The notes below the pieces were generated by a model. That model worked only from the letters and a program-made list of their open reading frames with translations, was not told the origin of the DNA and did not search any database. Both the position numbers and the translations under genes were made by a program. 64,000 bases of DNA from Octopus sinensis (taxonomy: Eukaryota). The stretch is taken from NCBI RefSeq assembly GCF_006345805.1, contig NC_042998.1, forward strand, positions 43,338,001 to 43,402,000, read 5' to 3'. This document shows, in pieces, positions 1 through 56,676 of the stretch (positions are counted from its first letter, which is position 1; each line of letters opens with the position of its first letter).

Positions 1-229
1 TATGCTTTACCCAGAGCCGGATCAAAATGTCCGGGGAAGAAATGGGTTAAATTAAATACTAAGCATTACATAAATGGCTTCGTAGAGAAAGGAAAAGCTT
101 CGCATTCATCTCAGTTCTTTTTCGAGGGTCACAGCCGCGAAGTGTTCTGTTTGTTTAATGAATCTAAAGGCAATAACCACTGGGAAGCTGGATCCTATTG
201 TCTAATGAAGAATGGACCTTGTCCAAACA
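1..229 (+). CDS. Exon a (5'-truncated by window): ApeC/apextrin C-terminal domain, part 1
   Basis: Frame 1 open: YALPRAGSKCPGKKW...VFC...HWEAGSYCLMKNGPCPN, matching the ApeC YxLP..CP and W..G.YC..K.G.CP motifs; donor A|GTAAGT at 230, phase 1. Confidence 0.9.
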
Positions 230-495
230 GTAAGTGTTAATTATTAAGTAAGGGTTAATGTTAAGCATAAGTCATAGATAATTGAGTAGTTGTTTCATAT
301 TAAAAGCTTTACAATAAGTCATTCGTATAATTATTTTTGAACTTTGTTCAAATTTTATTGCATGCACAATGAGTGCAAGGATTAACAGAAGATATAAAAT
401 ATGCACCTATCAACTATATCCACTAAAATTGACAAAAAACTTTATAGGCTAACCAGGGAGCATCTTAGGTGGTCGCTCGATTTGCTAGAAATACC

Positions 496-727
496 TATTT
501 CTTTATTACCCACAAGGGGCTAAACACAGAGCGGACAAACAAGGACAGACATAGGTATTAAGTCGATTACATCGACCCCAGTGCGTAACTGGTACTTAAT
601 TTATCGACCCCGAAAGGATGAAAGGCAAAGTCGACCTCGGCGGAATTTGAACTCACAACGTAACGCAGACGAAATACCGCTAAGCATTTCGCCCGGCGTG
701 CTAACGTTTCTGCCAGCTCTCCGCCTT
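496..727 (-). mobile_element. tRNA-headed SINE family 1, full length
   Basis: Head GGCGG..AGCTGGCAGAA (A box) and GAGTTCAAATTCC (B box); imperfect 16-bp TSD ATTTGC(T/A)AGAAATA(C/T)C at 480-495 and 728-743. Confidence 0.88.
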
Positions 728-2111
728 ATTTGCAAGAAATATCGGTTTCATTCCACCCAGATCGCACAATAAGTAAGATAGCTATAGCTATACTCTGTTC
801 TAAAATTAGATGGCAATGTCATGGTTGAAACATTTCGGTCTATAAGCTGGCTTGATTTGAGCTGACACGGAACTACACGGTAATAGTAACAATAGCAACG
901 ACGTAAACACGTTCCTAACAAAATTGAAATTGACGTCTGTCTCTGTCAATTGTGCTGATTTGCTCGAAGTCACAAAATATAAAGGAAATGGACTAGATAC
1001 TGTAGTGTCCTTGACATTCTTCAAAAGGGCAACAGACGCAAAAATGAAGTCATGGTCTCAACTAGGATCGCTGTAGTCATAGCGAGTAGGAAGTTTGGCT
1101 TTTACTCCACTGTTCCTATTAACGAATATTGGTTTCAAATTTTGGTACAAGGCCAGCAAGTTTGGGAAAGCGGCTAATTCGATTACATCGATACCAGTGT
1201 TCAGTTGATAGTTATTTTATCGACTCCGAAAGGATGAAGGACAAAGTAGACCTCGGCGGAATCACGTTAACGAATATTAACTACAGTGACTTTAACTATG
1301 TGACTTTAGTAATATTAAAGCGTCAAACCAGCTTTATTTCATCACGTAGATCGAATTAAAATAAATGCTAATTCTCGGCTAAAACCAATTTGAACAACAA
1401 AAATGTCATTGTACCTAAAGAAGAAATCTGTTTTATGATATAGAAAAGAATAGAAAATTGTTGCTGTTGTTTAGACCCTCGCAAGCCCAATCAAATTAAT
1501 ATACGATCAAAATTGTTTCAGCTATGGCTATTGTTTTCTTTCTTTTACCTTTTTAGAGATAATTTATTCATATAAGGTGGTATTAAACATTGTACTCATT
1601 TTAGAGGCAGCAAAATATGAGGTCAGCCAGATTCAGTTGCTATATCGATTTCAGCGCTCAACTGGTACTTATTTTATCGACTCTGAAGGGATAAAAGGCA
1701 AAGTCGACCTTGGACTCTACATACATACATACATACATACATACATACATACATACATACATACATACATACATGCATACATACATACATACATACATAC
1801 ATACATACATACATACATACATACATGTATGTATATATGACTATCTTTGTCAGTACATAATAGAGTTTTATTGAGATAATTTTCTATTCAAACTTTATGG
1901 AAATATAAAACAGTAATCCAGAAATACTGAGTTTCTTCCCTCTTGTAAGATTTATTCTCTTTCTAGTTTATTTCTTCGTTTAAAGAGGCAATTTATCAAT
2001 TATTCCCATTTCGAACATATAACCGTAAGGAAATCATATGACCCATAAATTCAATTGATTTCCTTTCACAAAATATATACTTGTCTATTATAATCGTTTT
2101 AATGGATTCAG

Positions 2112-2285
2112 AATTTCAGGAGGGATACGTGAAAATATACCAGTCTAATAAGAAATATCGAAGTACAATGTATAGATATTGTTGCCGGAAAGATGGTGCT
2201 GCAATAAAACCGATAAAACTACCAATATCGCATCCGTTTATCTTGTTTATGTCAAACTTGTATGAAGTGTGTCAAGTCGTAAAAG
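2112..2285 (+). CDS. Exon b: ApeC domain part 2
   Basis: Acceptor TTCAG|; (K)FQEGYVKIY...YRYCCRKDG...PIKLPISHPFILF...CQVVK (ApeC YCCR.DG, I.LP...PF.L, CQ.V motifs); donor G|GTAATG; phase 1-1. Confidence 0.9.
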
Positions 2286-3061
2286 GTAATGTCTTTCTTT
2301 ATTATTTATATTGGTAAATAGTAGAAAATGAAGTTACTATTGTTTATTGGGTATCTACTTTGATATTAAGCAATTTGACGATATCTTCAAAAGAATATCT
2401 TCAAAAATGCTAAAGATTAAAATAAATAAACAAGAAATAACTCAGCGTCAATAAAATGACATTTCTGGGACAAGTATAAATGAGTGAAATGTTTGTAAGT
2501 GAAATCACTAAAGTTCCTTAATAAATCTATCAACTACAATGATATTAAGAAGACAATAATAAATAATCCAATTTAAACTATATCATTAGAAATCAAAGAT
2601 GTTTTATGGTGGCTATCATACATCGGTGATAAGTTCTCAGTGCTTCCTCAACATAGTTTCGAGTTCTTGTGATTCTCACGGGAAAGGTAAGAACATTACA
2701 GCTTCCCTTTCTTTCCTTAACAGCTTGTTGTTTTGTGATGAGAAATCGATATTGCACACTTTTCGAAAGTTTTATCAACAGTTCTCGTAATATTCTGTTA
2801 ATTAAAAAACTACGAAATATTTATTCTGGTTATTTTGATTAGTAATCCATGTGCATAGATAGTTTTAAATTTTTGTCAGATGTGACAGCACTGACAACTC
2901 TTACTAGGGTCACTGAGACTGGCGGTTTAATGTCTCCTCAAACAGGGGTCCTGACTCGAACACTTGCAGTAGAGTGAACTCAACTAAAGGCTCGCAAGAT
3001 TTTAGGTGGTGATGTTAAACCGGACGGCGTATTAAGTCTACCAGACAAATAGCCTATTTTT

Positions 3062-3211
3062 GTGACGTGTATCATAACGTGTCGTCGTGACGTGTCGTCG
3101 TGATGTGTCGTCGTGACGTGTCGTCGTGACGTGTCGTCGTGACGTGTCGTCGTGACGTGTCGTCGTGACGTGTCGTTGTAACATGTCGTCGTGACTTGTG
3201 TCGTGACGTGT
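3062..3211. repeat. 13-bp CpG-rich minisatellite (GTGTCGTCGTGAC), about 11 units
   Basis: Direct reading. Confidence 0.92.
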
Positions 3212-4678
3212 ATTTAACAAGTTAGAGAGAGACGCAAAGGGAGAAATTACGAGTCAGTCAGACGAGAACTACCAGCCGAAAAGAAGAAAACGAAAAGAAG
3301 AATAAGAACTCACTTCCGATGAATAACAATTTCTTCAACGAACGTTTGGACATATAATCAAACAGATAAAAGATTATTGCAATTGAATGCTGTATTTCCG
3401 TGTCTTGATATCGAAGTATTTATCTCCTTTGTGATTACAAACGAGGTTTTCACAAGACTGTCATATTGCTATATTCTTTGTTGCATTGAAGTCTGTATTT
3501 CTGTTCAGTCATTTTTCTGCGTATCTTTGATAATGAAATATTTATCTCTATTTTATGTTAATAAACTAACAGTTTTCACAAGACATCATCTGCTAAATTT
3601 GTCTTATGAAGTCCGAATTTTCGGTCAGTCATATTTTCTTCGTATCTTGATACCGAGATATTTATCTCTTTTTTATGGTAACAAGGGAACAGTTTCCACA
3701 GAAAATTGGCGACGAGGATGAAATAAAATAAAATAAATTTTCTTCGATGAATCGTTAAGCACTTTCATAAGCTGTGACAACGTTTGAAATTGAGGAAATT
3801 ATCAGATCGTATTTTTAAAAACTGACTTACATTGGTTCACACAAATGTATTTTGACGAATTATGAGAATTATTTCGAAATGCATCGATTACTATTTAAAA
3901 TGTATTTCCATATTTCCGGTGAGCCATCCTTTCTTCATATCTTGATACTGAGATATTTATCTCTTTTTGTGATAACAAACTAACAGTTTCCACAGCTATA
4001 GTGGTATTTGAACTCGGAAGGCAAAGAGCCGGAACAACTACTGCAAAGAAACCATTCTGCCGTTCTTACAGTTCTGCCAGTCTATTACCCTGAACCTACC
4101 TTGTAAGAATGAAAAGTAAAGTTTTCCTCGGTGGAATTTGAATTAAAAGAATTGGCTTAACTACCGCGCAAGCATTCTACCCGAAGCTATAACAACTCTG
4201 CCAAAACGCCGCCTAGTAACAGAAATTATAACCCGGAATAAATTTAGTAATTCTGAACTGAAGAGAATGGCAGTACTACAATATTATTCTCAGCAACTAA
4301 GTAACGTCAACAACGCTGACAATAGAATCACTTGTATAGATAGTACTTCTCGTAAATCAGTAAATATACTCAGATGCATATTCTAAGCGGATAGATAAAA
4401 CAGTTGTGAAAATGAATTGAAAACGCCCACTCTTTTATAGATATTGATGCTGTGGTATAACTTACATCAAAAGCTTTTTATAATAATAACTTCCATGTTT
4501 CTGAATTTCTTGTGCTTTCGTATATACGTATGCTTTTTTGATTTGAAATTATTTTTGATATTACTGAGATTCGATTATAGAATTTTTTCTTTGATATTAT
4601 AACAATAGTTCATCAAACTCAACAGAATGAGGAGATGTACGTGCTAAAGATGTCAGAAGATTTATTATATATAGATGA

Positions 4679-5077
4679 CTAGCAGTATCGCCCGGCGTTG
4701 CTCGGGTTTGTAAGGGAAATAACTATATAAGCATTTTTAGAGAGTTATAGCCAAAAAAATAGCAAAAAAATGCATTAGAAATGGAAATAAAATGATGGTA
4801 AATTTTTTTTAAATCGTTGACTCATCGTAGACATTTTTAGAGAGTTACTTCCCTTATATAATAGCGAAGAAAATGCATTAAAATGGAGAAAAATGATGGT
4901 AAATTTTTTTTTAAATCGTAGACTCATCGTAGACGCGCGCTAATACCCAGAAGGGCTCGTTATGAATCACGACTATAAGATACCCGGTTTTGGTTAAACT
5001 GCACCGCAAAATGTGGGAGTAGTTAGGAATCTAAATCGTAGGAGACAGACACACAACTTGACTTTTATATATAAAGA
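4679..5077 (-). mobile_element. Non-autonomous Helitron
   Basis: Minus strand A|TC...CTAG|T, no TSD; hairpin CCCGAGCAACGCCGGG 8 nt before CTAG. Confidence 0.85.
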
Positions 5078-5311
5078 TATTGCGCCGATGAGTTAAAAAT
5101 ACTTTGCGTTCGATTCCAACTTTATGTTTACTTTCGTATTCGTATTATCTTCCTGCATTACATTCTGTTGACGGAATTCTAACGCAATTACCAATCATTC
5201 TTCATTGATTCATCTGTAAAAATAAAATAAAATAACATCTAAAAGATTTTATAGCAATTATATTATCTTCCTTGTACATTGATTTGTAAAATCTAATCTA
5301 ATTTCTTTTAG

Positions 5312-5452
5312 ACATGGCATCTTACATCGAAGAAATTAATTACTTAAGACATCGAGGAATTAGGACATCATTTGGTGGTGAACATCCGCATGTTTACAAG
5401 TGGAAATCTGGTTTAAAATTTAAATATTGTTATTATGTTCCTTTGAAACAAG
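5312..5452 (+). CDS. Exon c: ApeC domain part 3
   Basis: Acceptor TTTCTTTTAG|; (D)MASYIEEINY...GGEHPH...LKFKYCYYVPLKQ (ApeC terminal G.HP and L.YCYY); donor G|GTGGGT; phase 1-1; not in the ORF track. Confidence 0.88.
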
Positions 5453-6216: not shown

Positions 6217-6250
<34 letters not shown>

Positions 6251-6619: not shown

Positions 6620-8050
6620 ATACTTTTCTATAAATTCTCATAACATAGATTCTGGGATTGTAATCGCTCCTGGGCGAGTGTATCCTGTAAGTTTTTCGTT
6701 CGGTTTTGCGTGCTGGGCTTGGAATTTTCCAGCATTAAACTGCATATTATTGTCCTCAGCCCATCTGTAAATTGAGTCTACCTCCTGCTGCAGGCATGCA
6801 ACATTGCTAGGGTTTTGTATTTTCTGCTGGACATTCACATTGCCTGCGCAGCTAGCAAGAGTGGATATCCGGGCAGCTGAGGACATATCTGAAAGGGCTA
6901 CTATGAAAAGCAGTGGTCCCAAGACAGTGCCCTGTGGAACACCACTCACTATTCGTGTTTCCTTCGAGGTGGCTCCATTGGTCACCACTGTTTGTTGTAG
7001 GCACAGCGATAACACTTTGCTTTTTTATACGGACAATCTTTTTTCAGGTGCATCCCACCGCATGCTATGCATGGCTCTACATCCCGATATTTTTTCTGTT
7101 TTTCATGCAACGCTTTATGTGTTTTCAGACTTTTTGCATTGGTCTTATGTGGAAACACTCTTTCTGTTGAATTTCTTCCGTGTCATACCTTAAATTTAAT
7201 AGCCTGTCACACTTTTCCAGCAGTTTCTGCACTGTCAAATCCTGGTTCATTTCCAGTTTTGATAGAATTTTCGTTTGGATTTCTGCATCCCTTCTATCTA
7301 TCAATCATCGTGCAAAACTCAAACATTTGAAAATATCTGGTGTAAGCATATCTAGCCTAAATGTCTTACATTCTTTGTTGACTCAACCTGTGTAAGTAGT
7401 GAAGTCTTCATCTTCCCTTTTTTCTATGTTTAAACATTTTCATCTTTCCACCTAGTAATAAAGAGTGAGCACTTTTCACTAAACATTTTGCATAAAATGT
7501 CAGCTGTGTCGGTGAAATTTATGTCGGACATTTTTTGACGATATGAAGTAACTATACTTCTCATGCTCTGCTGCTGCAAGTTTTCTTAAAACTAGACGAG
7601 TTTTCCTTTCCTCCTTCCAATCTTTATATTCTTTTTCGAATATTTGTTACTCCTTCGGGGTCCTATTTTAATTCGCTTATGGAATTTGCTACATGTTTAG
7701 GAGAAAATATATTCTCCGGTTTGGTTATCAACCTCATTAATTGCAACATTTGCTGTTCCTTGAATTGTTGCTGTTTGTGCAAATCAACTATCCCAGCTAA
7801 CAAAGCCTTCCATATTTTATGAATTTCGTAAGTTTACACAAGATTTTTGTTTATTTTTTTTTCCCTCCGCATAAATTTGTCTTCCCCCGTCGCCACTGTT
7901 GTAAAGTGGTCTTTTGCCACTTTTACATATCTTTTGACGACGGTTGTCAATCTGACCGATATTGTTATATTCCGAAGTCGTTGATAGAATGCTTTTATCT
8001 GGCACTGTACGACCCCCCCCCCAGTCTTACAGTGATATTATCCTCAAAAG
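6620..8050 (-). mobile_element. Decayed CR1/L2-type LINE fragment (RT, with weak EN remnant)
   Basis: ORF 6638-7015(-) contains [14 protein letters not shown] and QFNAGKF. Confidence 0.8.
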
Positions 8051-8351: not shown

Positions 8352-8832
8352 TGTATATATATGTAAATATATATATATTGCAATGTAAGTTATATACCAT
8401 TTCCAAACATACCTGAATTCACTATAATAGGATAGCTTCTGCTTAGCAACGATCAATGGTACCACAACACTTGACACCCCAGCGATAGTCAGTTTGATTT
8501 AAAGATAAATGACTCATAAGAAGTTAACTGGAGCTCAGTCCTACATCCTTGTTTGGATGTCTCTTCTCAGGCTTAGTACTCAGTTGTATATATATATATA
8601 TATATAAGAAATATTGAATTTCTAAATCTCTCGTAGAGACATGTACGGTGGTGGGGCGATAGAATGTTTGTATACTGTCAATCTAACAAGAACGTGACAG
8701 TAGGGGGTACACCACCGCTGTATAGCTCTAGGAAGCATCGAACGCCTCCTGATAGCTTTGACACATTTTTTCCCTGTGTCCTTATGTACATATACGAAGG
8801 GGATACAAACACCCCCGGCTGCCGGAACTGCA

Positions 8833-8878
8833 TCTAGGGACACCGTGTTTCAGGATCGTTGTCCTTCATCGGCCTAGA
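8833..8878 (-). ncRNA. Type I hammerhead ribozyme motif (U4C core variant)
   Basis: Exact reverse complement of 9182-9227. Confidence 0.75.
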
Positions 8879-9181
8879 GTAGCAGACACCGGTCAGCTGG
8901 TGATATTTGCCTCGACTTCGTAATTGTATATACCTATATTCAGTGAAGTTTAATATAGCCTTCCTAGGGCTATACAGCGGTGGTGTACTCCCTACTGTCA
9001 CGTTCTTGTTAGATTGACAGTATACAACCATTCTATCGCCTCACCACCGTACATGTCTCTACGAGAGATTTAGAAATTCAATGTTTCTTATTTTGATAAT
9101 CAGTGATTAAACTTCACTGAATATAGGTATATACAATTACGAAGTCGAGGCAAATATCACCAGCTGACCGGTGTCTACTAC

Positions 9182-9227
9182 TCTAGGCCGATGAAGGACA
9201 ACGATCCTGAAACACGGTGTCCCTAGA
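9182..9227 (+). ncRNA. Type I hammerhead ribozyme motif (U4C core variant), GUC cleavage after 9221
   Basis: TCTAGG-CCGATGA-AGGA(CAACGA)TCCT-GAA-ACA(CGG)TGT-C-CCTAGA: 6-bp stem I, 4-bp stem II, 3-bp stem III. Confidence 0.8.
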
Positions 9228-9405
9228 TCCAGTTCCGGCAGCCGGGGGTGTTTGTCTCCCCTTCGTATATGTATATAAGGACACAGGGAAAAAATGTGTC
9301 AAAGCTATCAGGAGGCGTTCGATGCTTCCTAGGGCTATACAGCGGTGGTGTACCCCCTACTGTCACGTTCTTGTTAGATTGACAGTATACAACCATTATA
9401 TATAT

Positions 9406-13505: not shown

Positions 13506-13615
13506 ACTGTGGCAGAGTTATTCAACTAAAGAGGAAAGCTCGAAGTTCAATAATAACTTCCCCGAATTTTCCAAGAAAATATAGCGATAACCTCCTCTGT
13601 CACTGGCTTATCAAG
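13506..13615 (+). CDS. Exon d: CUB domain part 1
   Basis: (D)CGRVIQL...IITSPNFPRKYSDNLLCHWLIK (CUB CG..., SPNFP..Y....C.W.I); TAG| acceptor, AAG|GTGAGT donor; phase 1-0. Confidence 0.93.
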
Positions 13616-16927: not shown

Positions 16928-17046
16928 AGTCCAAAAAATTCTTTGATAAGACTTAAATTTTTGAAATTTTTCGTCGAAGGCAAGAAGAAAAAATGTCCAG
17001 ATTATGTTGAGATTCGTTTCAATTTGATAGGTCAACCAGGAATCAA
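16928..17046 (+). CDS. Exon e: CUB domain part 2
   Basis: TTTGCAG|; SPKNSLIRLKFLKFFVEGKKKKCPDYVEIRFNLIGQPGI; AA|GTAAGT; phase 0-2. Confidence 0.92.
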
Positions 17047-17705: not shown

Positions 17706-17827
17706 ATATTGCGGGAAAATGCCAATTAAGGTTGTTGTTTCACGAAGAAACATAATGATGATAACAATGAAAACTAACTACAAATTTTCTCGAATCGGAT
17801 TTAAAGCAATCGTAGACTATATTGAAG
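17706..17827 (+). CDS. Exon f: CUB domain part 3
   Basis: TTTTTCCACCAG|; (K)YCGKMPIKVVVSRRNIMMITMKTNYKFSRIGFKAIVDYIE (CUB YCG and GF.A); G|GTTTGA; phase 2-1. Confidence 0.9.
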
Positions 17828-18217: not shown

Positions 18218-18350
18218 GAAGAAAACTTTGTTTCAATTTAAAAGACAACGGGCGTACATATCGTGGTAAAGTAGATATGACGAAAGAATTTGACAAGTGC
18301 CGTTTCTGGAATGAATCTACGAATTGTCGGCATCATCCTTTCAATAGTTG
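18218..18350 (+). CDS. Exon g: Kringle domain part 1
   Basis: ATTTCAG|; (G)RKLCFNLKDNGRTYRGKVDMTKEFDKCRFWNESTNCRHHPFNS (kringle C....G..YRG, C..W); TG|GTTAGT; phase 1-2. Confidence 0.92.
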
Positions 18351-18767
18351 GTTAGTGAAAATATTCTGTTTTAAGTATTTAATGCATTATTTAAAACCTT
18401 TAGATTTTTTAAAACTCTTATACGAATTCTAGTTATATTTTAAGCAACAAACTCACAAATGTTCAGCTAATTTATGCTTTCCTGAATGATGTAAGTGTAG
18501 TTTGATTAATGTTTTTAAAATAAACATAGAAGGACATAGAGAGGATGGTCAATAGATAAACTGGAGGAGGCTTATGGAAAAGACACAGAGCTAAACACGA
18601 AGGTTGCTAAGGTATGTTTTCTGAGATACGAGAGTACAAAAGCCATTCGAATGGTCCAGGTGGTTGATAACTGATGTAGAAACAAGTAACTATCCGAGTT
18701 TTAACAGACAGGACTGAATTGGTGTGCACTAAACAATTACGAGAACATGGGATTATTTCGGTGGTAC

Positions 18768-18834
<67 letters not shown>

Positions 18835-19055
18835 GGCAGCGAGTTGGCAGTATCGTTAGCATTCTGAGTTCAAATTCTCCCGAGGTCGACTTTGCCTTTC
18901 ATCTTTTCGGGGTCGCTAAATTAAGTACCGGTGAAACACTGGGATCGTTGTAATCGACTAGTCCACTCGCTCGAAATTTCATGCCTTGTACCTATAATAA
19001 AAAGGATTATCATTATTATTATTGAGTGAAAGAGCAGTGCATGCCATCAAAGCGG

Positions 19056-19106
<51 letters not shown>

Positions 19107-19241
19107 CAAATTCTGCCGGGGTTGACTTTACCTTTCATCCTTTCGAGGTTGGTGCATTAAGTATCAGTGGAACACTGGCGTCGATATAATCGATTGGTCC
19201 CCCTTCCCTAAATTTCAGGCCTTGTGCCTTTAAAGGAAAGA

Positions 19242-19322
<81 letters not shown>

Positions 19323-19501
19323 ACTACTACGAAGATGCCAACGACCGCTCAGCTCAAAGTCTCTCTTGACCAGAAATGGCCTGAACTCTTCGCATGAACA
19401 CCCTCCCTTTACATAACTTCATGTCCCTCTACATGGCCTTGCTTTTTGCTTTTTGAGCCAAAAAATTAACTTAACTTAACTTACTACTACTACTACTACG
19501 T

Positions 19502-19552
<51 letters not shown>

Positions 19553-19565
19553 TGTTTGATAACAG

Positions 19566-19687
19566 GGACATAACCAGAGGCATTGGCAACCACAACCATT
19601 GTCGAAACCCAGGGCATGGTTTACAGCCTTGGTGTTACACGGATTCTCATAACTGCAGTCGAAAATATTGTGATGCCTGTCAGATTG
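19566..19687 (+). CDS. Exon h: Kringle domain part 2
   Basis: AACAG|; (W)DITRGIGNHNHCRNPGHGLQPWCYTDSHNCSRKYCDACQI (kringle NHCRNP, PWCYT, YC); G|GTAACT; phase 2-1. Confidence 0.94.
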
Positions 19688-24011: not shown

Positions 24012-24149
24012 CCGGATCTTATGATATGTTCCCCAACTGCAGAAAATTGAAACGGGAAGACAAAGAATTTTGTACGCGCAATGTAACCTCAATCAAACTG
24101 TGTCACAAAACTTGTGGACATTATATTGGAGCCGAGAGAAAATTTAAAC
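24012..24149 (+). CDS. Exon i: ShKT-like domain with 4 of 6 cysteines, plus basic linker
   Basis: TTGCTTTTCAG|; (A)[45 protein letters not shown]; C|GTATGT; phase 1-1; spacing x6/x10/x9/x3/x2 fits ShKT; not in the ORF track. Confidence 0.82.
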
Positions 24150-24479: not shown

Positions 24480-27400
24480 GAATTCTACAATTCTACTATT
24501 CTACTCCTTTACTACCATCGGAGGATAAATTTATACAAATCTATATACAACCTGGAGAAAGAAATATAAACCAAAACTAAACCCAAGACTAGTTCTAAAA
24601 CTAGTCCCGTGAGTACAATTCTTTTTTCTTGAACTGTATTAAACACACCGCTCATCCTGATTGTACTAAATACACTGAACTCTCCCACACACACTCAGAT
24701 ATAGCCACGCATTTCCGAATATATCGACACAAACTTTTCAACGGTGTATTCACTATTTTACATCAAGCCACCAATAACTGGCGTACAGTGTATAATACTG
24801 CCCCACTGAATATGGCCAATAATATTCAAAAACGCCACTGGGTTGAAAATGAAATTACTGCAATGATAACCGTTTGGTTCATTCACCACAACGAAGCTAA
24901 TGTTTACAATAAAATAGCTGAAAGCTTAGCGAAACAATCCTTTCACAGATCTGTAAAACATATCGAAAATAAAATAAAAGTGATTAAAAGAATATTTCCT
25001 ATTTTCCACACGCACATGGCAACACTAGAAGTCATTCTTGCCAATGAATGCAGTGCACCAAATGACCCAACTCCAACAGGTCAGGGGTCACTTCAACGAT
25101 CCGATAGTCAACAACAAACACCTGACCTAATTCCGCCCATTCTGGATGCACAAAAGGCAATGGATGTACCTTCTTCCACCTTAAACTGTGCCAAACTTCC
25201 GTGTCACAAAGGATGTCCCTGAACCCAGAATGCAACCACCACCATCTGAAGGGCACAAAACGATCACAAAATAAATATAAACAGCAACAGAGGAAATCTA
25301 CGACAACAACAAGAACAAAATACAACCACGTTTCCCCTCCTACAATCAAACAACGTAGACAGAACCATGAAAAAACCATAACACCAACATGAAATATGTA
25401 TCCTTTGACCAAGTGGCAAACCAAAGAGGTAACTCTTTTTTACTGACTTACCTAGAAAATATGAAGGCCGACCTAAGCCAGGAGATCCAACGAGCTATCA
25501 GCAACCACAAGGACCACACACCCACTACCAACAAGAAAATCATACACACACAGCTCCATACAAGAACTACCCACATTGTTACCACTGAAAAACATAAAAC
25601 ATAACTTAGAACAATGCAAACATCAAACTTCCCTTACCTCGACATTCCTGTTAAATGTACGTGGCATCAACCCATCAATTATTGCCCCAAAATGGAAGAT
25701 CCCATATATAGAGAGTTGGCTTGCCGAAACGGCACATTGCTTCCCTTTCTTTATCCTTACCGAGACTCACCTGAACAACACCCATATGGACGCCGAGGTG
25801 AAAATAAAAGATTTCACCATTGTTCGTGCGGATCGCACAGACCGGAATAAGGGAGGGACAGCCATCTTTATCCATGACTCCTTTTCACTTGATGCCAAGG
25901 ACATATTTTCCAATGGCTACTGTGAATCGGTATCACTATTCAGCAAGGCCAAGGACATAATCATTGTTGGTCTTTACAGGCCTCCCCAAGCACCTCTAAA
26001 GTGCTTTGAAAAGTGCCTTAGCCAAGTCAAGTCCTTCCTTCGGAAGTACCACAACGGAAACATACTAGTGATGGGTGATTTAAACCTCCCTCATGTGAAC
26101 TGGCCCACAAATACTCTGAAGTTAGGCAAATGCTCTACATCAGATAGAGCAGCAGCAGAACTGCTCTTTAATCTAATGGATGAATACTTCCTGACTCAGC
26201 TAGTGCTCGAACCAACGAGACAGAATAAAACGATCTTGGATCTGGTATTGACCAATCACTCTAGCTTCGTTCACAGTATTTCAGTTGAAAAAACTCTCCT
26301 CTCAGACCACGACATGGTACTCTACAATTTTAATTTCCGACATATAAAAACCAAACCAGCCAATCCCACTCCATGGCACCCATTTGACAACATAAACTTC
26401 CACAAAGCGGACTGGGGAGCAATCAGAAAGGATCTGTCTTTCATCGACTGGTCTTTTACTCTCAATTCCACCCATATTGAGACCGCATGGCAGCACTTTG
26501 GAAACATTGTCACCTATACATGCTCTAAACACGCTCCCACGAAATCTACTAACACAAACAGAAACCGGCTCCCTAAAAAGAAAAAAACACTCATCCGGCG
26601 CATCAAAAGACTCAACAAAAAAAATCAACCAATTAAAATATTCCCACACACAACATCCACATTCAACAACAATGAAAAGGCTAGAGCTGGAAAAACTTCA
26701 TCTGCAGACCGACATGAAAACCTCCATTGAAAATCAAAGAGCTGTGGAGGAACAGTGGGTAATCAAAAACATCAAACAGAACCCAAAAGTGTTCTATTCT
26801 TATGCAAATAAGCATAGAACCACTGTCTCACCCATTGGGTCATTGATTGATGATAACGACATTCACCAACACGATGCTAAAGAAATGGCAGAAATACTGC
26901 AGAAACAATACTGCTCTGTCTTTAGTGTTCCCACTGATATTGACGTAAGAGAAGCGAACGAAGTTGACTCCCAACATAAAATCTCAGACATAACCTTCAC
27001 TGCTACTGACATCGTAGCAGCAATAAATGAGGTCAAAGACTACTCTGCTGTAGGCCCTGATAGATTCCCCGCTAGTCTTCTGAAGGAATGTAGATATCAA
27101 CTTGCAGTCCCTCTGACCAACCCCTGGAGAAACTCGTTAGACGCAGGTTATATACCGAAACAGTTTCTATCCCAGTCAGTCATCCCGGTTTTCAAACAGG
27201 GAAACATATCCCTCGCACTCAACTATCGCCCAATCTCACTCACCTCCCACATCATTAAAGTGTTTGAAAGAGTGTTAAGATCAAGGATAGCTGACTTCCT
27301 GGAGACCCAAAAACTCCTAAATGCAAATCAGCATGGCTTTCGCTGTGGCAGGGACTGTCTAACACAGCTCTTACACCACATTGAAGATGTACTCAAAGCC

Positions 27401-28679
27401 TAGGGAACAGGCTCGAACTCTGACGTCATATATCTTGACTTCAGTAAAGCGTTCGACAGGGTAGACCATATTATCCTACTCTCAAAATTGGCAAATGTTG
27501 GAATCCGTGGAAAACTTCTACACTGGATTAAGTATTTACTGGCGAATAGAACACAACATGTTGTAGTTGATGGAGTCCACTCAAGCCCAGCAAAAGTCAC
27601 CAGCGGTGTCCCCCAAGGGACTGTCTTGGGTCCGCTACTCTTCATAATTTACATAAACGATCTTTCTAGTGTGATCGTCTAGTGGTTAGGAAACAAAAAA
27701 AAAAAAAACGTGATCGTCTAGTGTTGTACATTACTGCAAAGTGAAAATATTTGCTGATGACACTAAGCTCCAGCAAATCGTCAATGAAGAAGCAGACCGA
27801 ACTCAACTCCAGTCTTATCTATATGCTGTGAGTCAATGGGCAGACAGAAACAAAATGCAACTGAACGAGGGAAAATTTGAGCTGATGCATTTTGGAAGAA
27901 ATTCCTCACTAAAACAGCCATACTCTCTTCCTTCAGGGGAACCGCTCACAGTCTCTAACAATATCAGAGACCTGGGTGTAATTGTTGATGACGATTTCAG
28001 TTGGAGTGCACACATCAGCAAGTAGGTCGATATAGCTCGTAGGATGAGTTCCTGGATCTTAAGGAATTTCCGGTCCAGAGAACAAGGTGTTATCATACCA
28101 CTTTTCTCCTCCTTTGTACGACCACACCTCGAATACTGCTGCCCACTGTGGTCTCCCCATACAAGACAAAGCATCTCGAGGATTGAGTCACCCCAGAGGG
28201 CACTCACTAAACGAATTGAATGCATGGCTGCTCTTAAAGCCTTGAAACGGTACATCATTTGTACGATGTGGAGAATATACCGCCAACATTGCCCAAACGA
28301 CCTGAACATTAGCTTCAAGGTTTATCCAAGACTGAGACCACGGGCCATACGTCCCCTGCCCAATTCAAGATCACAGCATACATGTACACTGCAACATAAT
28401 TTCTTTTCCTCAACAGGCCCTGCCCTATTTAACATTGTCCCGAAAGAGATCAAAGAGGAAAAGGATCCCATCAACTTTAAACGGAGTCTAGATAGATTCC
28501 TTCAAAGAATACCAGATAAGCCACCCATAATTGGATACAACTAACCCAACAAGAACTCACTACTTGAATGGACCATAAACAAAACTTGACTTAAACAGGA
28601 TTCGAATAATCCTATCAGGTGGTGCTATTAAGTTAGACATGGCCTGGACCAATCTCTGGTCGAAACATATCTAAGTTTA

Positions 28680-29384: not shown

Positions 29385-29558
29385 GTAAGCGGAAATGTTT
29401 GGCACCAAGAATTACCGATGGTGAGGTGTTTTATCTGAAGAAGAAAAGATATAATGTCGGTGAAACAATCTCGATTTACTGCCATCAGAACAAAGAATGG
29501 CAGCAAAACGCTAGTTGTCTCTCGAATAGTCGTTGGAATATGGGAAGTATGTGTGGTA
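29385..29558 (+). CDS. Exon j: Sushi/CCP domain
   Basis: TTTTCTTAAAG|; (R)KRKCLAPRITDG...YNVGETISIYC...ASCLSNSRWNMGSMCG: 4 Cys plus conserved W; A|GTAAGT; phase 1-1. Confidence 0.9.
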
Positions 29559-33045: not shown

Positions 33046-33202
33046 TATGCCCTTTAGAATGGACTCACCATTTTGGGTCATGTTACCGTTTTTTCCATGA
33101 GCAACGAATCTATCAAGATGCTGAAGAAAAGTGCAAGGAACATAATTCTGTGGTACTGGCACCAGAAAATGAAAGAGAATACAAGTTTATGCTGTCGCAA
33201 AT
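33046..33202 (+). CDS. Exon k: C-type lectin domain part 1
   Basis: (I)CPLEWTHHFGSCYRFFHEQRIYQDAEEKCKEHNSVVLAPENEREYKFMLSQ (CP..W..F..SCY, A...C); AT|GTAAGT donor. An alternative in-phase acceptor at 33057/33058 would remove the first Cys. Confidence 0.88.
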
Positions 33203-33699: not shown

Positions 33700-35605
33700 A
33701 AAAATCCAAGCCCCCTGCAACAGTCAAAACCAGCCACTACACTAACCTCCACATTCCTACTCAATGCACAAGGTGTCAGCCCTTCCATCAATGCACAAAA
33801 ATGGAAGGTCCAATTCATTGAAGACTGGGTTGGTAACCATTCACACCACATCCCTTTCTTCATTCTCACTGAGACCCACCTTGACAACTCCACTTGGAAG
33901 CCGAAGTGAGAGTGAAGAATTTCACAACCATCCGCGCGGATCGTATCGGCAGGAGAAGGGTGGAACTGCCATTTTCCTGCATGATTCATTTACGGCAGAT
34001 GGAATAGTATATTCTCCAACGGCTACTGTGAATCAGTCACCGTGCACAACAAAGCCAATGACCTGACAGTAATTGGGCTCTATAGGCCGCCCCAAACACC
34101 CATACTGTGCTTTAAAGAATGCCTCAACAGCATAAGTGCTTTATTCAACAGTGCCATTCTAGCAACATACTCATGATGGGAGACTTCAATCTACTCTGTG
34201 TTGACTGGACTACAAACTGTTTGAAACCAAGCACTCCCCCTCAACCGCTGACAAAGAAGCAGCAGAGTCACTTTTCGACTTTACGAATGAGTTTTTCTTG
34301 TCCCAACTTGTCCTTGCACCAACAAGACATCAGAACATTTTGGACCTAGTGTTTAGTACCACACTAACACTATACATAACGTTACAGTGGAAAAAACCCT
34401 TCTTTCAGACCATGACATGGTTCTCTGTAACATGAAATTCCACCAGCCGAAAGCAATCCTAGTGACCTTTCTCCAGCCCACCCATTTGACAACATGGATC
34501 TCCATAATGCCAACTGGGATGCAATCAGGACGAGCTATCACATGATGACTGGTCCTTTACACATACACACATCTCCACCAACCATAAAACATCTTGGCAG
34601 ATCTTTGTAGACACCGTCACAGACATATGTGCAAGACACTCCCCACCAAGACCTGTGACAAAAAGTGCAGAATCCCCCAAAACAGAAAAACCATTATCAG
34701 AAAATAAAAAGAACAAACAAAAAATTAACAAACTAAAGTACTGCCAACCAACACACACATTCGACGGCTATCGCACTGCTTGAATCCAAAAAAATAACCT
34801 CCAACAATGCATGAAGACCCTCATCAATAACCAAAGATCAGCTGAGGAGAATGGGCCATTGAAAAAATCAAACTCAACCCCAAGTGTTCTTTTCATTTGC
34901 GAGGAAACGCAGGGTCACTTCTCCACTGTAGGCCCTCTAATTGACGAAACTGGCACTCTCCAAGATAATGCCAAATCCATGGCCGAGATACTGCAGAACA
35001 ATACTGCTCTGTTTTCAGCAATCCTGATATGGCCGATCTGGGCTGTATCAGTGATGTCAACCCCCAACACACTATATCGGACATAACGTTTAGTGCCCCT
35101 GATGTCTTAGCGGCGATAAACGAAATAAAACACATTCAGCAGTAGGCCCCGATAGGTTCCCTGCTTGTGTCCTGAAGGTGTGTCGACACCAACTTGCATC
35201 TCCCCTTGCTAATCTGTGGAGAAACTCACTGGATGCTGGCTTATTCCAAAAAACCTTCTGTCCCAGTCTGTTGTCCCAGTTTTCAAAAAGGGAAACAAGT
35301 CCCTTGCAGTGAATTACCGTCCGATCTCACTCACCTCTCATATCATCAAGGTATTTGAGAGGTGGTGAGATCTCGAATAACCCAATTTCTGGAAAGCAAC
35401 AGACGGCTGACTCCAACCAACATGGGTTCCGTAACGGAAGGGACTGCCTAACGCAGCTCCTGCATCACTTTGAGGACATTTTGAGAGCTTTGGGAGAGGG
35501 CTCCAACACCGATGTCATCTACCTTGATTTCAGTAAGGCCTTCGACAGGGTCGATCACAAGATCCTATTGAAAAAACTATCCAACATTGGTGTCTCTGGA
35601 AAGTA
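33700..35605 (+). mobile_element. Second decayed copy of a related CR1-type LINE, truncated inside RT
   Basis: [50 protein letters not shown]; ends at NIGVSGK. Confidence 0.9.
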
Positions 35606-42997: not shown

Positions 42998-42998
42998 G

Positions 42999-49013: not shown

Positions 49014-49111
49014 ATATGCTGAAAGTAGCGTATGGATAGGTTTAACGTTATCAGGTAAATCCTGGGTTACTAATGATCATCATCCTCAATCTTGGACGAA
49101 TTGGAAAAAAG
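49014..49111 (+). CDS. Exon l: C-type lectin domain part 2
   Basis: ATACAG|; (I)YAESSVWIGLTLSGKSWVTNDHHPQSWTNWKK (WIGL, W.NW); G|GTACGT; phase 2-1, after a 15.8 kb intron. Confidence 0.92.
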
Positions 49112-51546: not shown

Positions 51547-51578
<32 letters not shown>

Positions 51579-52191
51579 GTATATATATATTCATACTCAC
51601 ACATACGTACATTGTGTAATGTCTTTAACCCTTTCCTTTTAAAACAACATTGCTTTACTTGCTCACTCATTCTGTTATCCATGTGTATAAAGTTTTTCTT
51701 GTATGTGAGGAAGAAAGAACCCTAGTAACAAATATTGGAGTAAAGATTATTAGAATCAGTACAGCGTCAGAGAAAATACCTTGCATTATGAGTTCAAATC
51801 TCACTTCGGTCAGCTATTGTTTTTCATCCTTACTGGCTCACTAAAATAAAGTATGCATCAAGTACTGGAGTAGATTTACTTCAATCAACACATTTCTGCA
51901 AATTTCAGGCCTTGTACCTATACTAGAAACAATTAAGTATGGCGGATTGACAAAATCGATTGAGCGTCCAACGAAATGCTTTGTGGCAGTTGCTCTCACT
52001 CTTGACATTCTGAGTTCAAATCCTGGTGAGATTATCTGTAGGAGTTCCATAAAATAAGGACCGATCAAATATTGCAATCGATGTAAACGATTAGCCCTGG
52101 TTTTGTGATTACTGGTTTTGTGATTAAATTAGAAACAATTGTTGTCATTGTTGTAAATTGTGGGATAATCAATTGAATTTCTTTTTATCAG

Positions 52192-52329
52192 GGCAACCAA
52201 ACCTAAATAAATCACAAGCAAATTGTGTAGTGTTTTCCACTTTAGATGATAAAAAATGGAAGAATGTACCGTGTGACTGGTTGCACATGAATGCATTCTT
52301 TTGTAAGCGGCCGGCGGTATACCAAATTG
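52192..52329 (+). CDS. Exon m: C-type lectin domain part 3
   Basis: TTTCTTTTTATCAG|; (G)QPNLNKSQANCVVFSTLDDKKWKNVPCDWLHMNAFFCKRPAVYQI; G|GTGAGT; phase 1-1. Confidence 0.93.
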
Positions 52330-52392
52330 GTGAGTAAACACGATATTACTTAAATCTATCAATACACATACGTACGTACATACATACATATA

Positions 52393-52423
<31 letters not shown>

Positions 52424-52481
52424 CATACATACATATATACATACATAAAATATACATTCATGCATGCATACATAACACATA

Positions 52482-53377
52482 CGAGGGAGTACCCAAAAGT
52501 AACCAGAAACGTTCTCTGTGGGATAAGCCCGCTGTTAGAAGCCACTTGATGCGATCCTCAGGCATCAGTATGCCAACCAGCGTCGTCGTGGCAAGTCGTA
52601 CTGCCACGTTGTGCGTCTTTATTTTGTAGTGTTTCTCCCCTGTTCGTCGATTTTTGCGATGGTTGAAACTAAAGAACAGCGTGCTTCTATGACATTCTGT
52701 TTTCTGCTGGGCAAAACGGCGGCTGAAACAGCTGTCATGCTTCAAACAGCTTATAAGGACGCTGAGCAAAACAAGTTTACGAGTGGTTTTCAGGCTTTTG
52801 GAATGAACAACTGTCGTTTGAAGACCAATCTCATTCAAGACGACCGTCGACCTCCCAAACAAATTGAAGCATCATGAAAATTCATGAACTGATCTTGGAG
52901 GATCATCACCGAACAATTGACGAACTTATTGATATGACTGGGGTGTCATGGAGCTCCTGCCAACGAATTTTGAACGAGGAATTGCGAATGAAAAGAGTTG
53001 CAGCAAAATTTGTGCCTCACTTGCTCATGGAAGATCAAAAGTAGTCACAACTGAATGCGTGTCGTGAACTGAAAGAACAATAGGATATTGATCCGGACCT
53101 TTTTTCGAAGGTCATCATTGGTGACGAAAAGTGGAGCTACGGAATTTGCAGATGTGGAAAAGGTGAAGAAAAAAAATTAAAAAAGAAAACGACGGAAGCG
53201 TTCAAAGGCATCACTTTGCAAGGATTCCAGTACCACTTTGCAACAGTGGAAAACGCGTCTGGACCGAATCATTGCCTTAAATGGAAAATACTTTGAAGGT
53301 GATAAAAGTGTAAACGTGTAAAACTAAGTGAAGAAAATAATATTGTAAAATTCCGGTTTCTTTTGGGTATCCCATCG
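52482..53377 (+). mobile_element. Internally deleted mariner DNA transposon
   Basis: TIRs CGAGGGAGTACCCAAAAGTAACCAGAA / TTCCGGTTTCTTTTGGGTATCCCATCG, TA TSD at 52480-81 and 53378-79; transposase EQRA...FCF.LGKTA.E, KFVPHLL, IGDEKW, GKYFEG. Confidence 0.9.
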
Positions 53378-53710
53378 TAATGTACATATACATATGTATA
53401 CACATATACATACATACATTCATTAATGCATGTATACATTCATACATGCATACATGCATGCATACATACGTACATTCATACATGCATGCATGCATACATA
53501 CTTATATTCATACATGCATGCATAAATATATACATACATGCATGCATACATACGGACGTACGTACATACATACGTACATACATACGTACATACATACGTA
53601 CATACGTACATACGTACATACATACATTCATATATACATACATAATACATACATACATACATATATGCACGCATATATACATACATATATGCACACATAC
53701 ATACATATAT

Positions 53711-54016
53711 GCACGTGATCACGTGACCGACCAGACCATCAGATGCTGCTACACATCGCTGGTCATAATGCGTTCGCCTTGCTTTAGCTTTCAAATGACG
53801 CCACCCCGCTGGTTAAGCGAGCAGGCCAACTGACGAAAGAGTGAGAGAAAGAGTGTTGAAAGAGTACAGCAGGGATCACCACCCCCTGCCGGAGCCACGT
53901 GGAGCTTTTAGGTGTTTTCGTTCAATAAACACTCACAACGCCTGGTCTGGGAATCGAAACCGCGATCCTACGACCGCGAGTCCGCTGCCCTAACCACTAG
54001 GCCATTGCGCCTCCAC
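53711..54016 (-). mobile_element. tRNA-headed SINE family 2 (tail type A)
   Basis: Minus-strand head GTGGAGGCGCAATGGCCTAGTGGTTAGG...GGTTTCGATTCCC; sits in (CATA)n. Confidence 0.88.
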
Positions 54017-54396
54017 ACATACATACATACATACATACATACATACATACATACATACATACATACATGCATACATACATACATACATACATACATACAT
54101 ACATACATGCATATACAATCGCATACATAAATATATACACAAATGCATGCGTACATGCATACAAACATGCATGCAAACACGCATACAAACATGCTTACAT
54201 ACACACACACATACGTAATAATTTGGCGATGAGTCAGTAACCGTCCAAAAAAAAAAAAAAGAAAAGAAAAGAAGATGAATGACAAAGAAAGAACGAGGAG
54301 AACAAAGAAACCGTTTAACGTTATCATGCTCCAATCTATACTACGCTTTCTATGCGCCTGAATCTATTGTAGTGACGATATTTCATTGTTGCAGAT

Positions 54397-54629
54397 AAGG
54401 CGGCGAGCTGGCAGAAACGTTAGCGCGTCGAGCGAATTGCTTAGCAGTATTTCGTCTGCCGTTACGTTCTGAGTTCAAATTCCGCCGAAGTCGACTTTGC
54501 CTTTCATCCTTTCGGGGTCGATAAATAAAGTGCCAGTTTCGCACTGGGGTCGATGTAATCGGATTAATCCCTTTGTCTGTCCTTGTTTGTCCCCTCTATG
54601 ATTAGCCCCTTGTGGGCAATAAAGAAATA
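54397..54629 (+). mobile_element. tRNA-headed SINE family 1, full length
   Basis: 20-bp TSD with 2 mismatches at 54377-54396 and 54630-54649. Older or partial copies lie near 1130-1262, 1604-1712, 3990-4200, 18834-18990, 19105-19230, 20492-20665, 31370-31490, 32680-32930, 50505-50730 and 51770-52090. Confidence 0.9.
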
Positions 54630-55699
54630 GATATTTTATTGCTGCAGATGTGTAGATTACTCCAGCCACAGACATAAGAGTATATGGTCCTCAGTTGAGG
54701 GCAGAGGGTCTGTTAGTTAGGTGCCATGCAATCTTACTCGTTAGACACAGATGCTAGACTAGAATACCTTATTTTAAGTGGAGAAAAAGCTTTGAGTGCA
54801 TCAAACTCATTCTCTCATTGCCATCAATTATTCAGCCCAGTGGCAAGATATAACCAACAGAATTGAGTCTATATAAGAACGCAGGAGATTACCAAAAAAA
54901 TTGTTAGAGAAATCTCTCCTCGGTGTACCATTCTAACTGCTTAAAACTATCGTCTGTTACGCCGGCTTACTGTCGTAGTCAAAGTTTTTAAATAATGAAA
55001 TTTAGTAAATCATAGCATTAAAACATGAACATTGAACTACACTAGGTGAAATATAATTATATTACGTTATAGAAACAAGGGCCTGTTATTTCATTCTCTC
55101 ATTACTTTTTAAAGGAACACTTGTTTAATTATGTAAATGCTTTGTAATTAAACTGTCCTTCATTAATTTGGAACTGCTGCTAAATAAAAGGATATATTAA
55201 AAGTGCTTCTACTAATCACTGTCATAAAAACTGTCACCAAGGAATTACCTCCCTTTGACTTACAAATTGTCTCGCTGCTGCAGTTGTTACTGTGACACCT
55301 CAACACTGTGTATACAGATTTGCTACAGTCTTATTTCTTTCCACCTCTTCGTAAAATTCTATTCGGCTGAGCAACTTGAATGCTATACCGACAATTATAA
55401 ATCTGAGTAGGTTTCAGCTTGCAACGTAAAAGTTCTGTTATTTATTTTTTTTTCGTGCAGAGGCGACAAATTTTAATAATGAAAATGAAATGTGTTAGAT
55501 TTTTACATAGAAGTACTTCCTTAGACATAATTTTAACGAGAGTGGCTATGAACTTTTGATGAAGGGGAACAACTAAATAAACTAATAATTAACGGGTTGT
55601 TGTCAGTAGAAAGCAATGCGTCAAAATATCGAGAGGTAAAAATGGGTTTGCATAGGGCCTTCACCACCACTTAGAAAGTTACAGAAGCACCGCTGACTA

Positions 55700-55970
55700 T
55701 CCAAAACCAGAAAGATCTGGGAGAGAAAGGCCCTCCTTCAGGGAAGCATACAATGCGTCAGGCTCTAACCTGGAAATCACAAGGGAGGGTTAAGAAAGAA
55801 TGTCCTCATATAGTCGGTATGGGATACTAAAGCAGATCTGAAAAAGCAGGGATCCGAGTGGAGGGGTGCAGAAACGATAGCCCAGAATCGAGAAGAGAGG
55901 AAAAAAGTCGTCGAAGGTCTATGCTCCATAGAATGCGAAGGGCTTAAGTAAGAAATTAAGTAAATAAGTA
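55700..55970 (+). mobile_element. RTE-type LINE 3' end
   Basis: MRQALTWKSQGR...IAQNREERKKVVEGLCS; TAAG-type tail. Confidence 0.65.
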
Positions 55971-56549
55971 ACTCTGTTGCAAGCATATGGGCACCTGTCT
56001 GGCCCTAGGATTGCTTCCTCTGTACACCACCACCGCTCACAGAAGCCCTGAAAAATTTCATGTGCACATGCATTCTTTCCCTGAATGAATCATAACCCCC
56101 CCCCCCAGTGAATTGTACCCTAAATACATTTCATCACTTTATGTTTGAAAACACGTCCCACTTGCATTTTACTGAGTTAGATAAGATATTGCATTAGCAG
56201 TTACATTTTCTCATAAAGTAGGCACAAGGTTACGAAATCTACGCAAAGAATTTACGAGAAATAAATCACCTAATTAGGTCCTATTCCGATTCATCATGCT
56301 GAATTAATACATTTTGACCATTAAATGTCGATCGCAAATTCAGAAAATTCTATAAACAAATGCCCTTAATTGTTTGTCAATATACACCTTGTTGTTTGTA
56401 ATTATATAAGATGCATAGAGCATTCATATATCTGCTTTATAAAATTCAAGGAGAATGTTGATATTCATGCTGGTAATTAATCTAGTTAAACATGTCACAT
56501 GGAATTTTGCATATTTTATATATGTTTTATATATTTACATATATTTCAG

Positions 56550-56676
56550 AGTGTCAAGACCTAAGTGAAGAATGTTCTGAATTTATAAAAAATTCTCAGC
56601 ATTTCTGTAAAACGAAACAGGACTTCGCATTACAATATTGCTCTAAAAGTTGTAATTTGTGTCATTTACTAAAGGG
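56550..56676 (+). CDS. Exon n: complete ShKT domain
   Basis: TTTCAG|; (E)CQDLSEECSEFIKNSQHFCKTKQDFALQYCSKSCNLCHLLK, 6 Cys spaced x6/x10/x10/x3/x2; GG|GTATGT; phase 1-2. Confidence 0.92.

Follow-up and report, generated by a model that had tools for sequence, protein, structure and literature searches.

Part of an Octopus sinensis gene that probably encodes a secreted multidomain astacin-family protease with relatives across molluscs and in a nemertean

This study concerns a 64-kb stretch of the Octopus sinensis genome (64,000 nucleotides of contig NC_042998.1, positions 43,338,001 to 43,402,000; hereafter the window) and the multi-exon gene on its plus strand. Its exons in the window very probably encode the tail of a multidomain zinc endopeptidase of the astacin family (MEROPS M12A), working by the general mechanism set out below. 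The window is ~35% G+C and rich in microsatellites. An earlier note, made from the letters alone, had described 14 in-frame exons, 660 stop-free codons and the module order ApeC-CUB-Kringle-ShKT-Sushi-CTL-ShKT, with phase-1 junctions between the domains. The exons were placed again from plus-strand open frames, Pfam matches to the pieces and GT/AG sites, leaving the earlier exon list unused. Fourteen exons were rebuilt, comprising 1982 nt, or 660 codons plus 2 nt, with zero stops. The introns between them were GT-AG in 13/13 cases, and the exon ends fell in phases 1,1,1,0,2,1,2,1,1,1,2,1,1,2. This independent reconstruction reached the same end, position 56676, and agrees with the annotation. 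The 660-residue model is identical to residues 281-940 of the annotated product, P0005 (949 aa).

The coding locus of P0005 is on CM016860.1 of assembly GCA_006345805.1, where the window corresponds to L001:25950-89949 with 0 mismatches in 64000 nucleotides. When P0005 was fitted to this locus, 23 coding exons were found over 77 kb, 8 of them upstream of the window, and every junction had a single GT-AG solution that reproduced the annotated protein. The 15 exons in the window are the last 15 of the gene and together encode residues 281-949. The extent first given for the gene, 1 to 56676, was right for the exons within it and too short at both ends. The exon cut by the window edge (gene exon 9) begins 32 nt before position 1, and coding goes on to a 15th exon at 61321-61348, which supplies (G)NGDVVVSA and a TGA stop (61346-61348). 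The coding exons in the window are as follows.

1-229, plus strand: ApeC exon a (exon 9); ends in phase 1; ApeC profile positions 6-91; donor ACA/gtaagt; P0005 residues 281-356
2112-2285, plus strand: ApeC exon b (exon 10); phase 1 in and out; Pfam ApeC profile positions 124-167, 33.9 bits
5312-5452, plus strand: ApeC exon c (exon 11); phase 1 in and out; closes the ApeC module (..KFKYCYYVPLKQ)
13506-13615, plus strand: CUB exon a (exon 12); phase 1 in, 0 out; Pfam CUB
16928-17046, plus strand: CUB exon b (exon 13); phase 0 in, 2 out; placed by splice sites and by CUB on the joined protein
17706-17827, plus strand: CUB exon c (exon 14); phase 2 in, 1 out; weak donor AAG/gtttga, the unique GT-AG fit to the annotated protein
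18218-18350, plus strand: Kringle exon a (exon 15); phase 1 in, 2 out; Kringle 52.5 bits when joined to exon b
19566-19687, plus strand: Kringle exon b (exon 16); phase 2 in, 1 out; Pfam and splice sites
24012-24149, plus strand: first ShKT (exon 17); phase 1 in and out; four cysteines, apparently degenerate; matched to the second ShKT by hhalign
29385-29558, plus strand: Sushi/CCP (exon 18); phase 1 in and out; Pfam Sushi 25.3 bits alone
33046-33202, plus strand: C-type lectin-like exon a (exon 19); phase 1 in, 2 out; in-frame acceptors at two sites, the upstream one used; GICPLEW in the annotated protein
49014-49111, plus strand: C-type lectin-like exon b (exon 20); phase 2 in, 1 out; WIGL motif; follows a 15.8-kb intron
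52192-52329, plus strand: C-type lectin-like exon c (exon 21); phase 1 in and out; QPN, with WKN for WND
56550-56676, plus strand: second ShKT (exon 22); phase 1 in, 2 out; six cysteines; donor GGG/gtatgt
61321-61348, plus strand: terminal coding exon (exon 23); (G)NGDVVVSA and TGA; also in O. bimaculoides isoform X5

Two splicing alternatives were considered and rejected. An in-frame acceptor at 33058, 12 nt downstream of 33046, would lose the cysteine of CPLEW, and 33046 is the acceptor used in the annotated protein. Reading through the final ShKT exon to a TAA at 56714-56716 was set aside in favor of the annotated splice to 61321, which gives the NGDVVVSA end shared with isoform X5.

The proposed domain order and the intactness of the gene were borne out by Pfam and hhalign. 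On the joined 660-residue protein, Pfam returned ApeC (76.9 bits), CUB (68.2), Lectin_C (53.7) and Kringle (46.2). The ApeC cut-off of 26.5 bits was exceeded with the in-window part (76.9 bits) and with the full domain (88.9 bits). The three ApeC exons joined gave 69.7 bits over profile positions 6-208 of 208, and all eight conserved ApeC cysteines are present (C290, C330, C347, C354, C380, C381, C410 and C454). The Kringle, with 45.6-52.5 bits against a cut-off of 34.3, has all six canonical cysteines, and its best solved-structure matches are the kringles of plasminogen, HGF and Kremen-1. There are eight cysteines in this module (18218-19687). The two beyond the usual six, C615 and C653 (P0005 numbering), show at least 90% conservation in the family, suggesting a fourth disulfide peculiar to it. 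The fold of this protein's C-type lectin-like domain (CTLD) is clear from Lectin_C (53.7 bits against a cut-off of 22.6), with the CTLDs of the mannose receptor, DEC-205 and Endo180 as the best solved structures. Two small modules scored lower. Sushi gave 18.3 bits in the joined protein and 25.3 bits alone, passing its cut-off alone only. The second ShKT gave 25.4 bits with Pfam ShK when searched alone (cut-off 20.9) and 17.3-17.9 bits, under the cut-off, in the longer protein.

The first ShKT (24012-24149) had no Pfam match, alone or in the joined protein, and its first and sixth cysteines are missing. A family profile of this module was compared with the profile of the second ShKT and matched with an hhalign probability of 96.9% (expectation value, E, 1.9e-10); the EGF-like and Sushi controls gave nothing. 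This position carries 4 cysteines in Octopus and gastropods and 6 cysteines in bivalves and the nemertean. The profile match indicates that the fourth module is a real but degenerate ShKT.

The N-terminus lies outside the window, and the earlier note had guessed that it could carry a protease. Extension upstream found one. The whole protein has the order putative signal peptide, short pro-segment, astacin, EGF-like, ApeC, CUB, Kringle, four-cysteine ShKT, Sushi, C-type lectin-like and ShKT. Pfam on full-length P0005 gave Astacin 107.7 bits, ApeC 88.9, CUB 67.0, Lectin_C 53.2 and Kringle 45.6, with Sushi (17.7) and ShK (17.3) below their cut-offs. The Astacin domain covers residues 36-224 (L001 12680-21749), and its score compares with a cut-off of 22.5 bits. 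The zinc site reads HELGHILGLAHEHKRKDRD, which fits the consensus HExxHxxGxxHExxRxDRD. In a 23-member alignment H125 is invariant, E126, H129, G132 and H135 are at least 90% conserved and Y180 is invariant. That the zinc ligands and the Met-turn tyrosine are invariant or nearly so argues for active enzymes. The nearest solved catalytic domains are those of fish hatching enzymes, crayfish astacin, tolloid-like 1, BMP1 and meprin. The EGF-like module that follows the catalytic domain has six cysteines. Residues 1-19 are hydrophobic and no later transmembrane segment was seen, both judged by eye and not by a predictor, and the octopus protein is probably secreted, as had been proposed.

The family was examined with an exhaustive HMMER search of 1.84 billion representatives using P0005 as the query. 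There were 241 matches at E<=1e-30, dozens of which align as one collinear stretch over residues ~20-937 at ~30% identity (E 1e-135 to 1e-44). The named matches come from gastropods (Haliotis, Patella, Lottia, Batillaria, Babylonia and Gigantopelta), bivalves (Crassostrea, Potamilus and Mactra) and the nemertean Tubulanus polymorphus. The names on them are only 'uncharacterized', 'hypothetical' or 'Metalloendopeptidase'. The Pfam order Astacin, ApeC, CUB, Kringle, Sushi, Lectin_C, ShK is collinear in Octopus, Haliotis, Crassostrea, Batillaria, Lottia and Tubulanus, and the homologues usually add more Sushi or lectin modules beyond the shared order. A profile search with the 23-member alignment gave two proteins only. 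A 433-aa concatenation of the obvious exon pieces had zero matches in a set of 5.8 billion proteins, a result that reflects the word index of that search and not absence of the protein.

Intron positions were compared with one other species, Gigantopelta aegis, using a gene structure derived from the locus of its homologue (P0035). From ApeC to the second ShKT, 13/13 introns share phase and alignment column (11 exact, 2 within 3 columns). The earlier note had taken the gene to be lineage-specific, which does not hold: the full architecture is collinear in gastropods, bivalves and a nemertean, and the introns match those of a gastropod.

The inter-domain junctions ApeC-CUB, CUB-Kringle, Kringle-ShKT, ShKT-Sushi, Sushi-CTL and CTL-ShKT are in phase 1 in 6/6 cases, and the junctions outside phase 1 are all internal to the CUB, Kringle or CTL domains. 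The chance of this is ~7e-4, assuming a background of ~30% of introns in phase 1. Upstream of the window the astacin-EGF-like and EGF-like-ApeC junctions are also in phase 1. The exon-shuffling signature is genuine but ancient. Since the intron positions and phases match those of Gigantopelta, the mosaic and its phase-1 boundaries are older than the split between cephalopods and gastropods, and the nemertean member suggests that they are older still. These comparisons show a lophotrochozoan family, old by its apparent spread, with a common module order and phase-1 boundaries. With its conserved boundaries, it illustrates old exon shuffling cleanly.

Used as a query, the 660-residue model retrieved the 1086-aa 'uncharacterized protein LOC128250767' of O. 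bimaculoides, with 94% identity across its length. That protein carries Astacin, CUB, Kringle and ApeC domains, and P0005 is a member of its 90% cluster. All 23/23 exons are collinear and intact in O. bimaculoides, and 57/949 residues differ. Over the 949 codons synonymous divergence (dS) is 0.086, nonsynonymous divergence (dN) 0.027 and dN/dS 0.32. The gene is intact and under purifying selection, and a ratio of 0.32 fits a working secreted protein. By module, constraint is strongest in ShKT, Sushi and the EGF-like domain and weakest in ApeC (dN/dS 0.53) and CTL (0.70), the counts being small.

These results also bear on the idea that the gene is spurious, either because annotation or assembly is at fault or because a decaying pseudogene happens to have open frames. 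Some gene models lend themselves to that idea. One model from another assembly (P0008, 788 aa) skips the first ShKT, Sushi and part of the CTLD, and O. bimaculoides isoforms X1-X4 bear a long tail that is not conserved. The idea is hardly credible when set against 660 stop-free codons over 14 canonical exons in which every module fits its profile, 23 exons that are collinear and intact in a second octopus at dN/dS 0.32, and matching intron positions in a gastropod.

The variant models have features of their own. P0008 joins 19687 to ~33117, which leaves out the first ShKT and Sushi, and has a different last exon. In the first CTLD exon it starts from an internal AG and so loses the first CTLD cysteines. 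Either the annotation is at fault or P0008 is a minor splice form. The ~145-residue low-complexity tail of X1-X4 was considered as conserved coding sequence and rejected, because one part finds no counterpart in the window and the remainder meets in-frame stops. The stretch 61323-61557 (plus strand), which overlaps the terminal exon, is read by X1-X4 in another frame as tail and has stops in O. sinensis. It is unlikely that the long tail is conserved as coding sequence.

The closest system in the literature is P-vulgata_14 of the limpet Patella vulgata (Open Biol 2020, PMC7333891). It has the same architecture, proteomics found it in one type of pedal mucus, and its authors proposed it as a possible antibacterial, defensive protease (PMC7333891). 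Its likeness to the octopus gene rests on the published architecture and on Patella homologues among our matches, not on its sequence. Comparable homologues, all secreted, include XP_050396408 (Patella), XP_009056306 (Lottia), XP_034311325 (Crassostrea) and XP_074650471 (Tubulanus). The octopus protein differs from them in ending at the second ShKT, in a very short pro-segment, in the loss of an ApeC loop and in having MLY rather than MHY.

In gastropods and bivalves, 130 ApeC proteins have been surveyed and divided into nine groups, with mention of groups of 'highly complex' architecture (Front Immunol 2022, PMC9585378). In its supplementary table, three of the homologues (XP_034311325.1, XP_009056306.1 and XP_009047393.1) match accessions in or beside matching entries. 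Only short-form ApeC proteins were function-tested in that paper, and its main text does not mention cephalopods. Astacins are also known in combination with ShKT, CUB, EGF, kringle, C-type lectin and Sushi modules (reviews; PMC6409789, PMC9848320). The earlier note did not recognize a named gene with this domain order. No named or function-tested gene has such an order; the architecture itself is already in the literature, in P-vulgata_14 and in the ApeC catalogue (PMC9585378). The family is one that has been catalogued and not characterized in function, which removes part of the novelty claimed for it.

The earlier note had favored a pattern-recognition protein, and in its full form this would be a stand-alone, lineage-specific secreted receptor or lectin that binds microbes through ApeC, CTL and Sushi. 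Peptidoglycan binding is reported for the ApeC domains of short proteins from amphioxus and molluscs (PMC9585378), and the modules of the tail are typical of innate-immunity proteins. Mollusc ApeC proteins and the octopus protein both have a full ApeC domain with eight cysteines; the octopus domain differs in having neither the DXED-type acidic motifs nor a loop that is conserved elsewhere. The Ca2+ site of the CTLD is degenerate. Moreover, both the annotated product and all full-length homologues have the tail covalently joined to astacin, and the family covers at least two phyla. A stand-alone receptor is therefore very improbable. Pattern recognition serves as a description of the tail; the whole protein is first of all a protease.

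Astacins with ShKT modules (M12-ShK proteins) form a second group of relatives, comprising the nematode NAS, cnidarian HMP/PMP and mollusc CreM12-ShK proteins (PMC6409789, PMC9848320). They too have astacin followed by ShKT, are secreted and often occur in barrier epithelia or glands. They usually carry ShKT alone, sometimes with CUB, EGF or MAM, whereas the octopus protein interleaves ShKT with ApeC, Kringle, Sushi and CTLD. The M12-ShK proteins are salivary products of vampire snails and are common in molluscs including Octopus (PMC6409789), and cephalopods possess astacin-like digestive enzymes (PMC9848320). The octopus gene could accordingly be read as a digestive or salivary-gland, venom-associated protease, comparable to the M12-ShKT proteins of predatory snails or the astacin-like myosinases of squid. 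However, homologues occur alike in grazers, filter feeders and a nemertean, so the family is not of predatory origin. Direct reading of the sequence found an adjacent Lys-Tyr pair between the third and fourth cysteines in neither ShKT, and the limpet ShKT was rated non-toxic by its authors (PMC7333891). We regard a digestive or salivary role as quite unlikely.

BMP1/tolloid and the meprins share the catalytic fold and zinc motif of the octopus protein (E ~1e-9 to 1e-10 to solved catalytic domains). There is also a likeness in logic, in that their non-catalytic CUB and EGF domains steer the choice of substrate. The octopus protein has no CUB/EGF array, MAM, TRAF or membrane anchor, and BMP1/tolloid and the meprins are without its ApeC, Kringle, CTLD and ShKT. 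A developmental or matrix-processing protease, like BMP1/tolloid or the ShKT-astacins of Hydra, would use its tail to dock on matrix or morphogen substrates. The core of astacin, EGF and CUB is consistent with this, as are the solved-structure matches to tolloid-like 1 and BMP1. Conservation since before the split between molluscs and nemerteans fits a basic physiological role, and Hydra ShKT-astacins act in morphogenesis (PMC9848320). Against such a role, there is a single CUB and no tolloid-type array, a dN/dS of 0.32 (ApeC 0.53, CTL 0.70; small counts) is a loose ratio for a gene at the core of development, the limpet member is a protein of adult mucus, and the pro-regions and tails vary greatly among family members. 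A developmental role is judged unlikely.

No other gene was called within 10 kb either side of the gene. Repeats and mobile elements were found in its introns and downstream of the second ShKT exon, as listed here.

6641-7024, minus strand: reverse-transcriptase fragment in the ApeC-CUB intron; RVT_1 27.9 bits, slightly under cut-off
8660-8955 and 9106-9401: 296-bp copies, 97.6% identical, inverted and ~150 bp apart
25477-28541, plus strand: decayed LINE-type retrotransposon in the intron between the first ShKT and Sushi; Endonuclease-reverse transcriptase 54.1 bits, RVT_1 weak
33736-35567, plus strand: LINE copy, 67% identical, in the 15.8-kb CTLD intron
53832-53996, plus strand: short interspersed element
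58380-58810, plus strand: short interspersed element
63737-63919, minus strand: short interspersed element

Both LINE copies are in sense with the gene. The pair at 8660-9401 resembles an inverted duplication of recent origin or two short elements. The three copies of the short interspersed element are 83-87% identical; one is intronic and two lie downstream of the second ShKT exon.

The general mechanism proposed for the octopus astacin has four parts. Once the protein is secreted, a furin-type cut after the basic RKLHKR would give the mature N-terminus and an active enzyme. The zinc site (HELGHILGLAHE and the Met-turn tyrosine) would then cleave extracellular protein substrates. The tail encoded in the window is predicted to be non-catalytic and to keep the protease attached to its targets or partners, with glycan, peptidoglycan and protein bound by ApeC, CTLD, CUB, Kringle and Sushi. 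The ShKT modules may be disulfide-stabilized spacers or regulatory modules.

Several features of the octopus protein weigh against this assignment or call for caution over parts of it. Around the active site, the Met-turn reads SVMLY in place of the usual SxMHY, with leucine for histidine and with the methionine and tyrosine kept; most homologues have MHY. The pro-segment is only ~11 residues long (residues 20-30 of P0005; L001 12680-12761), is basic, ends in RKLHKR and has no aspartate for an aspartate switch. Most homologues have charged, low-complexity pro-regions of at least 100 residues that finish at a furin-like site, and most members have a basic R/K-x-K/R-R site ~8-12 residues ahead of the mature 'W..G.VPY' start. 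Latency and activation of the octopus enzyme may differ from those of classical astacins. In ApeC, the DXED/DEXD-type acidic motifs, three of which are described for ApeC proteins (PMC9585378), are absent. The ~12-20 residue loop 'G.LPDG.Y..T' found in most homologues is also absent, and its loss may alter ligand binding.

C-type lectins bind Ca2+ and sugar through EPN/QPD, a glutamate and WND. In the octopus CTLD, QPN is preserved. The positions of the canonical Ca2+ ligands E, N and D are occupied by A, K and N: Ala stands for the downstream Glu, and WKN for WND. Some homologues retain QPN/QPD and WND. Because ApeC and CTLD both look modified, peptidoglycan or sugar binding by the octopus tail cannot be assumed. 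The protein stops 12 residues past the last ShKT cysteine, so the further C-terminal Sushi and CTL modules of other members are missing from Octopus, and no relic exons of extra Sushi or lectin modules were found downstream of the second ShKT. The short C-terminus is treated as a presumed lineage-specific truncation and gives no ground for exclusion from the family. Finally, the supplements of octopus skin-mucus proteomes list astacins and metalloendopeptidases, none linked to P0005, and have no kringle or apextrin entry.

The ApeC loop site lies in ApeC exon b (P0005 residues ~372-376), and the loop is also missing in one Haliotis paralogue and in Gigantopelta P0131.

As to setting, the limpet pedal-mucus homologue (PMC7333891) makes the gland role suggested by the earlier note plausible by analogy. 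By the same analogy, secretion from an epithelium or into mucus, with a protective or mucus-conditioning role, is tentatively put forward as the likeliest setting of the octopus astacin. A wider proposal, speculative and rather doubtful, is that the family, with the octopus gene among its members, is a recognition-coupled protease of lophotrochozoan barrier secretions. Its ApeC and lectin-like domains would bind microbial walls or mucus glycans, its astacin would cleave microbial surface proteins or remodel mucus, and the losses in octopus, which affect the acidic ApeC loop, the Ca2+ ligands of the CTLD and the distal tail, would reflect a shift to a new ligand in cephalopods. If this were true, the family would represent a type of humoral defense effector not described in model animals.

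None of this overturns current knowledge, and the gene is already in RefSeq as an uncharacterized protein. What the locus adds is a cephalopod member of a conserved family that fuses astacin to ApeC, kringle, lectin-like and ShKT modules and spans at least molluscs and nemerteans. Because a limpet member occurs in adhesive mucus and peptidoglycan can be bound by ApeC domains, the family may reasonably be considered a candidate mucosal defense or mucus-processing enzyme.

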